Source of the DNA: Octopus sinensis
Lineage: Eukaryota
NCBI RefSeq assembly: GCF_006345805.1
Contig: NC_043013.1
Span: 13,082,001 to 13,146,000 of the forward strand
DNA: 64,000 bases
Direction of reading: 5' to 3'
The notes under the pieces were generated by a model. The model was not told where the DNA came from, made no database searches, and worked only from the letters and a program-made list of their open reading frames with translations. Shown here piece after piece: positions 1,464 through 59,969 of this stretch (the first letter of the stretch is position 1; each line of letters opens with the position of its first letter). A program made the position numbers and the translations under genes.

Positions 1464-1534
1464 GGATGTGGTCCAGCAGCAGACTTCATGGCATTTGCTA
1501 ACCAAACAGAATTTGATGTAGACGAAGATGATGG
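1464..1534 (+). CDS. Unit A exon 7 (phase 0-2): [24 protein letters not shown]
   Basis: Poly-T tract + cag acceptor, gtatgt donor; paralogous to 44839-44918; corresponds to the TRPM GSGRxAD segment. Confidence 0.85.
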
Positions 1535-58500: not shown

Positions 58501-59969
58501 CAGCAATTTTTAGGGGAATGGTTAAATTAATACCATGAGCACCAGCACTTGACTGCTACTTTATTTTATCAAACTCCAAGAGGACAAAAGACAAAGATGG
58601 CCTCATCAAAAATTGAACTCAGAATGTTAAGTATCAAAAGTAATATGTTTTAACAATTCTGCCAGCTCATCACTATACTGCCATTGTTTTTTTAAATTTT
58701 GAGGAAATTTTAAATAATTGATAATATTTATGAAAAAAAATTCTTTGGCTCAGTGTCTGATACTAATTTGATGAGACCTTTGCATTTGCAGGCAACAGTC
58801 ACTGACATGTTTTGGTACTTTATTTTAATGACTCCCCAACTCCAGAAAGACAAAATGAAAGGTTGAGCAATGTAAAACTTGAACTCAATATAAATACTTG
58901 AAGCTAATACCACATGGTATTTTTTCTGACCCGCTAATGATCTTGTTGTTTACATATTTTAGTCTAATTAGATTTCCTCAGCAAAGCATAGCCTTCATCG
59001 GAGCTTGTCTTTTTCTTACTCACCACATAATTATTATTAATTAAGAACAGTTTTTATCAATTACTATGTTGGCTAATGCTGAGAATACATATATTTTGCC
59101 AATCCAGGTAATATCAGGTAATGTTACATAACTACAATAATTATAATCATACATTTTCAAATTTCATAGAAAATGAATGCTAATTTTCAAAATAAAAATA
59201 TTTTTGAAATTAAAACATAAATTTTAATAGATTTTTCTGATTTGTTTATTTGTAATGTGTATATACTATCAATAATGATAATACTGTTTATATATTGAGG
59301 AACTACATTAGTAATAATATCTGATACAGTTAACTGTGACAAATACACATACCCAATATTACCTTTCATATGAATTTAATTGTACAGTAAGCAAGGGGGA
59401 TAAATCCAATAAGATCAATATTATCTTTCCTTGGGCAAGAGGGGAACAAATAGAGAGAGAGAGAGTGAGTGATAAAAGGAGACACACAACCGGACATCTC
59501 ATGCAGTTTCTTTTCACATCTACTTAATTCAATTTTTATATTGTTAGTGTGGGGATCTAGTCTAATGGACACAAGAGATGTGTGTATCAGTGGTACCTGG
59601 ATAGGGTGGAAAGAGAGCAACCAGTTCTGTGGAGCAGAGGCTATTGTAGTAGTGGTAAAAAAGGCAAAGAGAGGACACAGCACAACTATAGGTCAGAATT
59701 TAGTGTGTATTGGTAAGTGACTTCATGCCAGTCTTATGAGACCTGTATGTGTAAGAGCAGCATCATCCCAGATGTGGAATCACTATTCCCCAGTGTGCCT
59801 CATTTTTCTCCATTTACTTCTGATGGCAAAATGTTTCTTTGCTTTTCCTTTTAAGTTCATTTGGCTTTTGTTTGTCTTTGATAGAAACCTTAGAGACGAA
59901 GAGGCATCAAATCCCTGTGATGCATTTGGTGAGGTAAAGTTTGTAGAATATGATCAGAAAATTGCAAAG
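1464..59969 (+). CDS. TRPM: Internal part of a multi-exon TRPM-family-like gene encoding at least 3 tandem MHR1/2 (SLOG)+partial MHR3 modules (14 exons in window; both gene ends lie outside it)
   Basis: The exons listed below join with matching intron phases into 1539 nt with no stop. TRPM motifs: [103 protein letters not shown]. Family assignment only; the ortholog cannot be assigned. Confidence 0.88.
2855..3039 (+). CDS. Unit A exon 8 (phase 2-1): [61 protein letters not shown]
   Basis: ttctaag acceptor, gtaaga donor, open frame; TRPM L(I/L)TV...D(L/V)AIL.AL.K-like motif; paralogous to 46231-46415. Confidence 0.9.
4000..5320 (-). mobile_element. R4/Dong-like non-LTR retrotransposon RT fragment
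   Basis: [14 protein letters not shown]; [11 protein letters not shown]...[14 protein letters not shown]...YKYLGI (ORF 4233..4565). Confidence 0.8.
5400..6180 (-). mobile_element. R4/Dong-like 3' fragment (restriction-like endonuclease region) with (AAC)n/(AAT)n tail
   Basis: Degenerate RPDI...DK...ID.SCP and [17 protein letters not shown] motifs on the minus strand; tail at 5400-5445. Confidence 0.65.
6349..6443 (+). CDS. Unit A exon 9 (phase 1-0): (A)[31 protein letters not shown]
   Basis: attacag acceptor, gtaaga donor; resembles the MHR3 QL.LAxxWNRxDIA motif; paralogous to 50098-50192 with homologous flanks. Confidence 0.85.
8330..9960 (+). mobile_element. Penelope-like element (RT + GIY-YIG), frameshifted
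   Basis: [25 protein letters not shown] and [36 protein letters not shown]; C-rich composition distinct from the flanks. Confidence 0.88.
11011..11042 (+). CDS. Unit B micro-exon 1 (phase 0-2): [11 protein letters not shown]
   Basis: tttattttcag acceptor, gtaatg donor; flanks homologous to those of 56260-56297; a 0-2 exon is required to join A9 to B2 in frame. Confidence 0.75.
13951..14032 (+). CDS. Unit B exon 2 (phase 2-0): [27 protein letters not shown]
   Basis: tttggtttag acceptor, gtaatt donor; PTDAFG-like motif; paralogous to 59885-59969. Confidence 0.85.
14300..14850 (+). mobile_element. Old RTE LINE RT fragment, also present at the paralogous position 60280-60810
   Basis: Degenerate match to 42550-43080 (EKAFDR-like and QFGF-like segments). 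Confidence 0.65.
14900..15235. mobile_element. Probable non-autonomous Helitron/Helentron-type interspersed element
   Basis: Contains gcagccgttttcgcgtg...(CA)n...tattttataca, a layout resembling DINE/HINE-type elements. Called by recognition only. Confidence 0.4.
16160..18990 (+). mobile_element. RTE-clade LINE (APE + RT), decayed
   Basis: [72 protein letters not shown]. Confidence 0.85.
19342..19525 (+). CDS. Unit B exon 3 (phase 0-1): [61 protein letters not shown]
   Basis: tttttcctcacatatag acceptor (the in-frame ag at 19352-19353 is an alternative), gtataa donor; MHR1 W..P.LLISV.GG...GL.KAA motif; overlaps ORF 19369..19605. Confidence 0.88.
20917..21056 (+). CDS. Unit B exon 4 (phase 1-0): (D)[46 protein letters not shown]
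   Basis: ttgtttcgcag acceptor, gtgagt donor; matches the TRPM AWIITGG..TGV.K.VG.A..DY...IGIA segment; overlaps ORF 20898..21083. Confidence 0.92.
21490..22960 (+). mobile_element. Helentron/DINE-like non-autonomous repeat: two tandem 244-bp units (from 21518 and 21762) plus a partial copy at 22826-22960
   Basis: Repeated block gcatacatttccaca..caaccgattttcaccaaacttta..acttatgtcc..gtcatgcacta. The family call is by resemblance. Confidence 0.5.
23245..23580 (+). mobile_element. CR1-like LINE 3' end, diverged relative of the 25399 and 28639 copies
   Basis: Similar to 26200-26530, ending ggtgcaccagcatggcctcagcc; lies between a (TC)n and a (TA)n tract. Confidence 0.6.
23581..25398. repeat. About 1.8 kb (TA)n/(TATATG)n microsatellite tract with short unique interruptions
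   Basis: Direct inspection; source of the YI-repeat ORFs. Confidence 0.98.
25399..26529 (+). mobile_element. CR1-like LINE RT C-terminal part and 3' UTR, 5'-truncated, with one frameshift
   Basis: [43 protein letters not shown]; [13 protein letters not shown]. Confidence 0.92.
26530..27295 (-). mobile_element. CR1-like APE endonuclease fragment, inverted against the preceding RT piece
   Basis: [43 protein letters not shown] (ORF 26497..27459). Confidence 0.9.
28005..29905. repeat. (TA)n/(TATG)n tract split by a CR1 3' fragment
   Basis: TA-rich at 28005-28638 and 29159-29905. Confidence 0.97.
28639..29158 (+). mobile_element. Second CR1-like 3' fragment with intact terminus and (taaggatt)x2 tail
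   Basis: Near-identical to 26057-26529; many of the differences are at CpG sites. Confidence 0.92.
30593..30749 (+). CDS. Unit B exon 5 (phase 0-1): [52 protein letters not shown]
   Basis: tttgatttctag acceptor, gtaaat donor; hallmark [14 protein letters not shown] motif. Confidence 0.93.
30911..31130 (+). mobile_element. tRNA-derived SINE, same family as 47007-47195 and 57061-57277; minus-strand relatives near 13010-13150, 13540-13690 and 58510-58665
   Basis: Shared gcag...gcagaatcattagcatgctgg head and ttgactttgc..tcc..gggg..taccagttg core. Confidence 0.65.
31860..33130 (-). mobile_element. Helitron RepHel (PIF1-type helicase) remnant
   Basis: Decayed Walker A ([13 protein letters not shown]), [15 protein letters not shown] and [22 protein letters not shown] (ORF 31881..32207). 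Confidence 0.8.
34400..34780 (+). mobile_element. RTE-type 3' UTR / RTE-tailed SINE with (GAT)n tail; shorter copies at 35810-36095 and 39960-40160
   Basis: Same terminus as 44230-44690 (aaaagcaccc..ttaggaagggcatc..gctgtagaaa..catggaaagcggacgttaaa-(gat)n). Confidence 0.8.
36499..36608 (+). CDS. Unit B exon 6 (phase 1-0): (E)[36 protein letters not shown]
   Basis: aattttag acceptor, gtcagt donor; KIP.V.V...GGPGT motif of MHR2/SLOG. Confidence 0.92.
37740..39880 (+). mobile_element. RTE LINE (APE + RT), heavily decayed
   Basis: [30 protein letters not shown]; collinear with 42040-43100. Confidence 0.8.
40780..41170 (+). mobile_element. R4/Dong-like 3' fragment with (CAA)n tail
   Basis: Degenerate CCHC-type and C-terminal segments similar to 47700-48230. 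Confidence 0.45.
41460..41740 (-). mobile_element. Probable Penelope-type terminal repeat remnant carrying a hammerhead-like core
   Basis: Minus strand reads ttgatgaa-gagc-tcc-gctc-gaaac (41583-41606). Confidence 0.5.
42040..44690 (+). mobile_element. 5'-truncated RTE LINE with PHD-finger insertion, 66-nt 3' UTR repeats and (GAT)n tail; absent from unit A
   Basis: ORF 42554..43159 ([20 protein letters not shown]), LLYADDL. Its flanks are adjacent in unit A near 1335-1345. Confidence 0.93.
44839..44918 (+). CDS. Unit B exon 7 (phase 0-2): [27 protein letters not shown]
   Basis: ttttctttaattatcag-type acceptor, gtttgt donor; SGRxAD motif; paralog of 1464-1534. Confidence 0.9.
46231..46415 (+). 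CDS. Unit B exon 8 (phase 2-1): [61 protein letters not shown]
   Basis: ttctaag acceptor, gtaaga donor; same length (185 nt) as 2855-3039; 42/61 aa identical by hand count. Confidence 0.9.
47007..47295 (+). mobile_element. Two abutting SINEs (47007-47195 and 47201-47295)
   Basis: The first matches 57061-57277. The second starts ggcgcagg..tggctgtggtaagaagcttgcttcccaaccac, as at 62621. Confidence 0.75.
47300..48860 (+). mobile_element. R4/Dong-like fragments (endonuclease part 47300-48230, RT part 48260-48860)
   Basis: [16 protein letters not shown]; [27 protein letters not shown]. Confidence 0.75.
49586..50046. mobile_element. Interspersed repeat with (CA)n tail (49586-49820), a (TA)n tract, and a minus-strand tRNA-derived SINE (49893-50046)
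   Basis: 49893-50046 is the reverse complement of the 62621-62770 family. Confidence 0.7.
50098..50192 (+). CDS. Unit B exon 9 (phase 1-0): (V)[31 protein letters not shown]
   Basis: atttcag acceptor, gtaaga donor; MHR3 L.L.WNxxD....I.....W pattern; paralog of 6349-6443. Confidence 0.87.
51560..52560 (-). mobile_element. Penelope-like element 3' part (GIY-YIG region), decayed
   Basis: [27 protein letters not shown]; IIAKPGKY...[13 protein letters not shown]...NSLN. Confidence 0.7.
53430..54120 (-). mobile_element. Second Penelope-like GIY-YIG remnant of a different family
   Basis: NPCTDRKC..C..DCKNKN...IYIRETKQ...[13 protein letters not shown]...QITEATHI...KLEW, with stops. Confidence 0.55.
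56260..56297 (+). CDS. Unit C micro-exon 1 (phase 0-2): [13 protein letters not shown]
   Basis: ttttattttcag acceptor, gtaatt donor; resembles the WIPENIKK motif at the start of human TRPM2 MHR1. Confidence 0.82.
57061..57277 (+). mobile_element. tRNA-derived SINE with 14-bp target-site duplication
   Basis: tattaaatatgagt at 57048-57061 and 57278-57291; empty paralogous site near 11930-11945. Confidence 0.88.
59885..59969 (+). CDS. Unit C exon 2 (phase 2-0): [28 protein letters not shown]
   Basis: tttgtctttgatag acceptor, gtaatt donor; PxDAFG motif; lies inside ORF 59736..60020. Confidence 0.9.

Follow-up and report, generated by a model that had tools for sequence, protein, structure and literature searches.

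Can the nucleotide-sensing part of a TRPM channel be multiplied within a single reading frame and, if so, does the product still belong to a channel? The question is raised by a 64,000-nucleotide (nt) stretch of the Octopus sinensis genome (G000:C17:13082001-13146000, + strand; hereafter, the window), an internal slice of the gene LOC115221041, which spans at least 240 kb. The window carries repeated exons for the MHR1/2 (SLOG) domain, the site where TRPM2-type channels read ADP-ribose (ADPR); to our knowledge, every characterized TRPM subunit contains exactly one MHR1/2. On the strength of the sequence, we consider it reasonably probable that blocks of exons of a TRPM2-like gene have been duplicated and now encode a pore-less, soluble protein of three to four SLOG modules, which would sense or buffer nucleotides or modulate a channel.

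A nine-exon block repeated in one reading frame

The 14 exons of the window are bordered by AG and GT at all sites, have compatible phases, and splice into a stop-free product. Its total length of 351 + 1065 + 123 = 1539 nt, or 513 codons, comprises exons 7 to 9 of one unit (U0), the whole of the next unit (U1), and exons 1 and 2 of a third (U2). The exons were placed with a TRPM processed pseudogene (L001) as the first reference (7 exons) and, for the remainder, by unit-to-unit alignment. The RefSeq protein XP_036366207.1 from LOC115221041 (“uncharacterized protein,” 1272 amino acids [aa]) has an exon chain identical to this reconstruction across the window. It contains both junctions between exon 9 of one unit and the micro-exon of the next (after ...EKTQQK and after ...GEAHWE), and its U1 is likewise 355 aa long. 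An earlier note on this DNA had described 14 in-phase exons with 513 stop-free codons, a 9-exon unit of 1065 nt and 355 aa, and a frame that returns to a phase-0 micro-exon at 6443/11011 and 50192/56260. The re-derived exons and the RefSeq chain match the exon set exactly, and the unit size and both returns are the same in the RefSeq model.

U0 enters the window with exon 7 (1464..1534), which encodes the GSGRxAD helix of SLOG, begins in phase 0, and leaves off 2 nt into a split codon. Next come exon 8 (2855..3039), coding for the C-terminal helices of MHR2, and exon 9 (6349..6443), which codes for the first MHR3 helix and ends in phase 0. U1 opens with an acidic 32-nt micro-exon (11011..11042) that starts in phase 0, has a conserved polypyrimidine/AG acceptor and a GT donor, and is homologous to the KKWIxENIKLR exon of TRPM genes. 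Exon 2 (13951..14032) has in-frame alternative acceptors at 13921 and 13969, and exon 3 (19342..19525), in which the LSDAT_euk match begins, has one at 19354. Exon 4 (20917..21056) is given here with the RefSeq donor; the donor homologous to those used by the other units lies at 21068, likewise with a phase-0 end, and a further in-frame alternative donor is found at 21035. Exon 5 (30593..30749) and exon 7 (44839..44918) hold the arginines equivalent to R302 and R358 of human TRPM2, respectively, and exon 6 (36499..36608) encodes the glycine-rich loop. Exon 8 (46231..46415) has an alternative in-frame acceptor at 46252 that corresponds to the X1/X2 isoform pair of paralogous RefSeq models. Exon 9 (50098..50192) again supplies the first MHR3 helix and ends in phase 0. 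U2 starts with a 38-nt micro-exon (56260..56297) and exon 2 (59885..59969) and runs past the window, with exon 3 at window +66681. All these exons are on the + strand.

Self-comparison of the window revealed a tandem segmental duplication, also on the + strand, in which the left copy (1135..16149) pairs with the right copy (41818..63367). The period is 43-47 kb, and nucleotide identity is 66-83%, introns included.

Four units, a leader, and a tail

Extension of the locus in both directions, one of the checks proposed in the earlier note, joined 60 kb of upstream and 140 kb of downstream sequence to the window, so that 264 kb were examined. The + strand of this region holds four complete 9-exon units, with 36 exons and 4302 nt (1434 open codons) in total. 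They are U0 (window -26451 to 6443; 1098 nt), U1 (window 11011 to 50192; 1077 nt with the homologous donors), U2 (window 56260 to 92595; 996 nt), and U3 (window 121595 to 173646; 1131 nt). The length of each unit is divisible by three, and none contains a stop. The claim of at least three SLOG modules in one frame can therefore be raised to four complete units in the gene. Each block opens with the TRPM WIxENIK micro-exon, covers the whole of MHR1/2, and closes with the first MHR3 helix; since each starts and ends in phase 0, the blocks join in frame. Such an arrangement probably arose when, within the 5′ portion of a TRPM2-like channel gene, an exon block flanked by two phase-0 introns was duplicated in tandem.

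Upstream of U0 lies a leader of four exons, in which the start codon is at C17:13039436. This leader lacks hydrophobic stretches and is disordered in the AlphaFold model. Leader exons are present only ahead of U0, and an acceptor is kept in every micro-exon. In U0, U2, and U3, the micro-exon codes for KKWIxENIKLR, a motif found ahead of MHR1 in TRPM channels; the micro-exons of U1 and of the tail have lost 9 nt and are acidic, with the frame still open. The acidic tail that follows U3 contains three more micro-exon copies, which alternate with small homologs of the last leader exon (L048:5514-5546 and 9290-9337, L049:5172-5203 and 6766-6804, L050:2253-2285, and L034:1922-1966). The tail is a second, smaller two-exon repeat in the same gene.

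Domain identity and ligand-binding residues

Each unit is a full TRPM SLOG domain. Against the Pfam profile LSDAT_euk (PF18139; 266 profile positions, cut-off of 25.7 bits), U0 scores 219.6 bits (profile positions 1-248), U1 170.2 bits (9-252), U2 201.8 bits (1-250), and U3 224.1 bits (1-263). Given scores of 170-224 bits against a cut-off of 25.7 and an absence of stops far from the neutral expectation (see below), these exons are not a product of chance. The units also match the Pfam profile LSDAT_prok, with 72-82 bits. Three SLOG stretches are recognized in XP_036366207.1 (P0025 in our set), and four each in the proteins P0177 and P0178.

The best relatives of solved structure are the Nematostella channel nvTRPM2 (6co7), whose residues 93-448 align with unit residues 22-358 (E = 2.4e-41), and human TRPM2 (residues 124-479); the alignments run from just before MHR1 to the first MHR3 helix. 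A structure prediction, also suggested in the earlier note, is available for one U0-type module of a paralogous O. vulgaris protein (P0180, residues ∼130-500), with a predicted local distance difference test score (pLDDT) of ∼90. In Foldseek comparisons, this module superposes on the MHR1/2 of TRPM structures (E = 2.7e-29 to 2e-26), with a template modeling (TM) score of 0.79 when normalized to the isolated TRPM2 domain 7aov. The modeled module thus appears to have the Rossmann-like α/β fold of MHR1/2.

In the MHR1/2 of human TRPM2, ADPR sits between Y295 and a loop, while R302 and R358 hold the ribose and the phosphates (PMC6759353). According to the alignment, the equivalents of Y295, R302, and R358 are F, R, and P in U0; F (or a gap), R, and R in U1; S, K, and K in U2; and P, R, and G in U3. 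The glycine-rich loop also varies between modules. Because the ligand-contact positions differ, and both ADPR-holding arginines are kept only in U1, the four modules probably differ in their ligands or in whether they bind a ligand at all. The isolated human MHR1/2 domain is described in a preprint as soluble, with a dissociation constant for ADPR of about 0.5 uM (bioRxiv 10.64898/2026.03.30.715250).

The product of the octopus gene can accordingly be pictured as a soluble cytoplasmic protein with three to four independently folded SLOG modules and no pore. Its function is the least certain part of the proposal: the modules may bind ADPR-type nucleotides, in which case the protein would buffer or sense such ligands, or it might dock on the neighboring TRPM2-like channel and modulate it, as TRPM2-S does in mammals.

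Absence of a pore and links to the neighboring channel

No MHR3/4 or transmembrane/pore exon was found in the 264 kb, and tblastn with MHR3 sequences gave no match. The MHR3/MHR4 profile PF25508 has no match between C17:13.02 and 13.286 Mb, the nearest ones being at 13875528 and 13892964; exon 9 supplies only the first helix of this region. Similarly, Ion_trans has no match in XP_036366207.1, P0177, or P0178, but does match the O. vulgaris channel model CAI9735657.1 (P0181). Compared with TRPM2 channels, the array gene lacks the MHR3/4 body, the six-helix pore, the TRP helix, the coiled coil, and NUDT9H, no separate search having been made for the TRP helix and the coiled coil.

The earlier note had left a choice between a channel with a multiplied sensor region and a channel-less poly-SLOG protein. 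At this locus, where 264 kb contain no pore exon and the RefSeq model is pore-less, the second alternative matches the DNA. For the family as a whole, the first is kept alive by O. vulgaris and O. bimaculoides models that splice the tail to a TRPM2-like channel. The O. vulgaris protein CAI9735657.1 consists of U3, the tail, a linker, a fifth SLOG, a TRPM2-like domain, and Ion_trans, while the O. bimaculoides models XP_052830018/19 run from exon 8 of U3 through the tail into the channel, over a gene range of 404 kb. In O. sinensis, the single SLOG of XP_036366251.1 (P0183) combines the leader and U0-type exons 1-5 with exons 6-9 of the channel itself. By joining array exons to a channel, these models support an explanation in which everything belongs to one giant channel gene: the downstream TRPM2-like channel would use the array as its 5′ coding region or as alternative sensor cassettes, its actual products would be channels that carry several SLOG modules or a choice of them, and the pore-less models would be truncated annotations. 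The need to reach the pore in frame would also explain why the frames are open while amino acid change is near neutral. However, this assembly places ∼550 kb, including inverted array copies, between the window's array and the channel body (C17:13.834-13.893 Mb), and the RefSeq model of the locus stops after the tail. Besides, no annotated model from any species links more than two SLOG modules to a pore, and O. bimaculoides has in RefSeq a separate pore-less four-module gene, LOC106871768 (XP_052830016/17), beside the channel gene. We regard a single giant channel gene as an unlikely alternative to the pore-less protein.

Module number and product ends

Read-through of the exon-9 donor in U0, U1, and U3 gives the sequence VR followed by a stop (GTA AGA TAA; window positions 6444-6452 in U0 and 50193-50201 in U1), and AATAAA is found 42-44 nt past this donor in U0 (6485-6490) and U1 (50236-50241). 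The O. vulgaris model P0180, from a paralogous array, ends with ...GEAHWEVR*, exactly at the exon-9 read-through. Composite terminal exons after exon 9 could therefore yield products with fewer modules, although AATAAA is frequent in AT-rich introns. Given these signals and the O. vulgaris model that ends there, the number of modules may vary from product to product, either by such ends just past exon 9 or by exon skipping.

The same signals would be expected if the array were a row of separate single-module genes and the junctions were read-through artifacts. In line with such an organization, the U3-type micro-exon has an in-frame ATG, which the model P0003 uses as its start. However, no leader-like or ATG exon was found between U0 and U1 or between U1 and U2, where the introns measure 4.6 kb and 6.1 kb, respectively, and the micro-exons of U0, U1, and U2 contain no in-frame ATG, yet keep a strong acceptor. 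In three species, the annotation also joins the units (O. sinensis and O. bimaculoides in RefSeq, O. vulgaris in the ENA genome-project models), so that separate genes seem very improbable.

A broader version of variable module number would combine exon skipping, ends after any exon 9, and splicing of the tail to the channel into a combinatorial sensor, that is, a set of proteins with one to five SLOG modules, free or fused to a pore, with pockets under diversifying selection. We see this as a long shot, although it would represent a new way of tuning a nucleotide-gated channel, by a variable multi-site receptor derived from its own sensor domain.

Lesions, sequence change, and conservation of the frame

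Exons of different units diverge at 22-32% of bases, similarly to the alignable introns. Simulation with the observed substitution spectrum and 10-14% divergence per lineage predicted 4-8 stops per unit. The observed number of stops is zero, and the simulated probability of a stop-free unit is 0.0004-0.012. Although at least 13 length changes have occurred, each exon has one and the same length modulo 3 across the four units, while just 22% of the gaps in introns are multiples of 3. (Counts of gap runs from pairwise nucleotide alignments were noisy, with 44% multiples of 3 in exons vs 22% in introns, and net exon lengths were used instead.) None of the 36 splice sites is disrupted. Conservation among the units falls on the same columns as conservation across TRPM proteins (rho = -0.49, p = 3e-19), and the core motifs are retained. 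Taken as a pattern of sequence change, this reads as selection for a translatable, folded product, whose surface and pocket residues may be free, or pressed, to change.

Several observations weigh against a functional multi-module protein. Most amino acids seem to be under little constraint: the ratio of nonsynonymous to synonymous substitution rates (dN/dS) is 0.74-1.10 between units and 0.78-1.0 in every bin of TRPM-family column conservation. Between recent array copies, compared over four exons and their flanking introns, exons and introns have diverged equally (0.025 and 0.023, respectively), and the exons carry 30 nonsynonymous vs 4 synonymous codon changes. Three of the four modules lack the arginine equivalent to R358. 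In the two-module AlphaFold model, the second module is not resolved, since the single-domain homologs aligned to one unit only, so that the packing of modules is not given by the model. The support for splicing consists of the DNA and the gene models, and the latter are not fully independent, because O. bimaculoides proteins entered the O. vulgaris pipeline as evidence (PMC10700109). A 192-aa query across the first junction retrieved no short transcript-derived protein from a set of 5.8 billion proteins.

Individual copies also bear lesions. Exon 9 of U2 has lost 64 nt at L039:8548-8595 (C17:13174548-13174595, window +92548 to +92595), which shifts the frame if the old acceptor is used, and the RefSeq model skips exons 4-9 of U2 together with exons 1-3 of U3. 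In a third array copy (13.47-13.52 Mb), the U2-type exon 3 is frameshifted at C17:13506111-13506206 (WNFSCQTYLFL*), which terminates the short RefSeq models XP_029647073.1 and XP_029647074.1.

Three open routes lead past the U2 lesion. The first uses a cryptic acceptor to produce a 17-nt exon. The second, seen in the O. vulgaris model CAI9735615.1, goes from exon 8 to the next micro-exon, read one base over, and then to exon 2 from an acceptor 32 nt upstream; it is open in this copy, too, with a length of 4317 nt. The third is the RefSeq route from exon 3 of U2 to exon 4 of U3. The possibility that the remainder of U2 exon 9 is an in-frame remnant was rejected, since the 64-nt deletion is out of frame with the old acceptor. 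The paralogous gene LOC115221043 and O. bimaculoides retain the full exon 9 of U2, plus an extra linker exon (CGRRKKNNESLDIFWRKI / RGRRVKNNESPDMFWRRI).

Much of this evidence would suit an array that is a decaying by-product, in which functionless duplicated fragments are spliced through inherited splice sites and symmetric phases, and the proteins are annotation constructs or are not made. The dN/dS values of ∼1 at all depths, the equal divergence of exons and introns in recent copies, the lesions in single copies (the deletion in U2 exon 9 and the exon 3 frameshift at C17:13506111), and the empty junction query all fit with decay, and many of the annotated models are fragments of 216-254 aa that end in retained introns. 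Against decay stand the four units that are open after 22-32% divergence (joint P < 1e-9 in the simulation), the net exon length changes, all of them multiples of three, the full set of 36 intact splice sites, the retained SLOG core motifs, and the orthologous units of O. bimaculoides, still open after ∼34 million years (My). On this balance, decay appears to us improbable, and a translated pore-less protein remains the preferred explanation. The combination of near-neutral amino acid change with a strictly held frame over ∼34 My calls for an explanation in any case.

Phyletic distribution and age

SLOG relatives numbered 2172 in a profile-free scan that covered 1.84 billion representative proteins. 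A search for multi-SLOG proteins had been suggested in the earlier note, and three or more matched SLOG stretches were found in only three octopus proteins and one sturgeon record flagged UNVERIFIED_CONTAM. Outside octopuses, more than three SLOG matches are found only in the latter, MGH0117658.1 (P0028, Acipenser sinensis), which consists of 2355 aa of shuffled repeats of one TRPM2 sequence and looks like an assembly or prediction artifact.

In octopuses, four-module proteins are predicted from O. sinensis LOC115221043 (XP_036366249.1) and O. bimaculoides LOC106871768 (XP_014773893.1, XP_052830016/17, and UniProt A0A0L8HB45), and several O. vulgaris models belong to the same group (e.g., CAI9735615.1, 1427 aa). 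Both O. bimaculoides and O. vulgaris have orthologous models with four units. The RefSeq names for fragments of the array include “TRPM member-like 2,” “TRPM member 4-like,” “TRPM member 2-like,” and “uncharacterized protein.” Because of these inconsistent names, octopus TRPM genes are miscounted by name-based surveys.

In a maximum-likelihood tree built from the SLOG region only, with few TRPM-alpha or TRPS sequences, U0, U1, U2, and U3 each form a 100/100 clade that includes O. bimaculoides and O. sinensis copies. The SLOG of the neighboring channel (U4; O. bimaculoides and O. vulgaris copies) also forms a 100/100 clade. U0 to U4 jointly form a 100/100 clade that is sister to the octopus “TRPM-like 2” channels, represented by O. 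bimaculoides XP_014781150-type sequences (the cluster holding XP_014781149) and XP_014774531. Given that XP_014781149, XP_014774531, and XP_052830018 are classed as TRPM-beta in Table S1 of PMC13143021, the units appear, from their sequences, to group with TRPM-beta (the TRPM2/4/5/8 lineage). An origin from TRPS, prompted by a sentence in the same paper (PMC13143021), was rejected, as its Table S1 files the neighboring octopus sequences as TRPM-beta.

O. bimaculoides split from O. vulgaris and O. sinensis ∼34 My ago (PMC10700109), and each unit type has an O. bimaculoides ortholog, so the five-module layout is at least ∼34 My old. Between species, orthologous modules have changed by 0.25-0.33 per site vs 0.07 for the SLOG of a sister channel, which means that the array modules evolve ∼3-4 times faster than the SLOG of the sister TRPM-like-2 channels.

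Comparison with known systems

The closest relatives of the array are the TRPM2 and TRPM2-like (TRPM-beta) channels: the units align with nvTRPM2 and human TRPM2 over the whole MHR1/2 and the first MHR3 helix, and their core motifs (including GSGRxAD) and exon layout with the WIxENIK micro-exon are inherited from the channel gene. In contrast to these channels, the octopus array has four modules per chain rather than one per channel subunit, and its ligand-contact residues differ from module to module.

Short forms that consist mostly of the melastatin N-terminus, with no working pore, exist in other TRPM proteins. MLSN-S is a short, truncated N-terminal isoform of TRPM1 of this kind. The nearest precedent for a regulatory role is TRPM2-S, the short isoform of human TRPM2, described as a dominant negative on the full channel in PMC6230687. 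Both are splice forms with a single MHR region, whereas in the octopus, the sensor is multiplied and, at least in RefSeq, has a gene of its own.

Outside ion channels, a SLOG domain acts as a stand-alone receptor for nucleotide signals in the bacterial Thoeris protein ThsA, which combines one SLOG with an effector and works as an oligomer. Unlike ThsA, the octopus protein has no effector domain, and the origin of its modules is an animal channel gene rather than a bacterial one.

Predicted proteins with more than one LSDAT_euk match each are also known from Crassostrea gigas (XP_019919132.1), Sanderia malayensis (gene9475), and one other animal (XP_072049892.1). These have just two SLOG domains, each followed by MHR3/4 in the TRPM2-like manner, and none has the block structure of the octopus array. 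They look like merged neighboring channel genes.

No paper on a multi-SLOG protein was found in the literature searched, and a 2026 survey of cephalopod TRP genes left out sequences without TRP channel domains. The statement of the earlier note that no example had been described is borne out as far as papers are concerned; as far as databases are concerned, it needs correction, since predicted proteins of this kind are already in RefSeq and UniProt (e.g., XP_014773893.1). The domain itself is not new, and public databases already list the gene models, though only under the names “uncharacterized protein” or “TRPM SLOG domain-containing protein.” The architecture is real and annotated but uncharacterized.

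A conserved four-module, pore-less octopus protein would be the first animal case of this sensor domain in multiple copies outside a channel. It would bear on the stand-alone function of MHR1/2 in vivo, on the ligands of invertebrate TRPM2-like sensors, and on the origin of new architectures by duplication of exon blocks between introns of the same phase. As such, it is of interest for the TRP and nucleotide-signaling fields, with a weight limited by the near-neutral sequence evolution.

Array copies and other features of the locus

SLOG exons are found on both strands from C17:13.06 to 13.87 Mb. The window's array (C17:13.04-13.28 Mb, + strand) is followed by an inverted copy on the minus strand (13.296-13.457 Mb), with the mirror point near 13.26 Mb, by partial copies at 13.47-13.52 Mb (+ strand) and 13.54-13.55 Mb (minus strand), and by a further copy at 13.778-13.788 Mb (+ strand). 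These copies correspond to loci L012, L018, L020, L022, L026, L027, and L029. The channel's own SLOG is at 13.849-13.872 Mb, after which come the sole MHR3/4 exons of this region, at 13.8755 and 13.893 Mb. The array measures ∼200 kb, and its large copies are 95-97% identical, introns included. Since both array types have matching O. vulgaris models, the copies are likely to be real and to predate the 2.5-My split of O. vulgaris and O. sinensis.

Elsewhere in the genome, there are TRPM copies that lack introns, contain stops and frameshifts, and extend from MHR1 into the transmembrane region. The one used here for exon placement, L001, is at G000:C10696:18118-21903 (minus strand), and others are at G000:C6303:928715-930676, 952960-954921, and 342913-345028, two of those on C6303 being seemingly identical. 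These are processed pseudogenes of TRPM channel mRNA.

No other gene was seen in the window. Its introns contain decayed pieces of non-long-terminal-repeat retrotransposons at 4233-4685 (minus strand), 17673-18146 (+ strand), 26497-27501 (minus strand), and 42491-43593 (+ strand), which match reverse transcriptase and endonuclease profiles; one of them has a PHD-finger-like tail. Long TA/CA-rich simple-sequence arrays at 23500-25400, 27950-28650, 29130-29930, and 34950-35250 match each other on both strands and yield spurious open frames of up to 593 codons.

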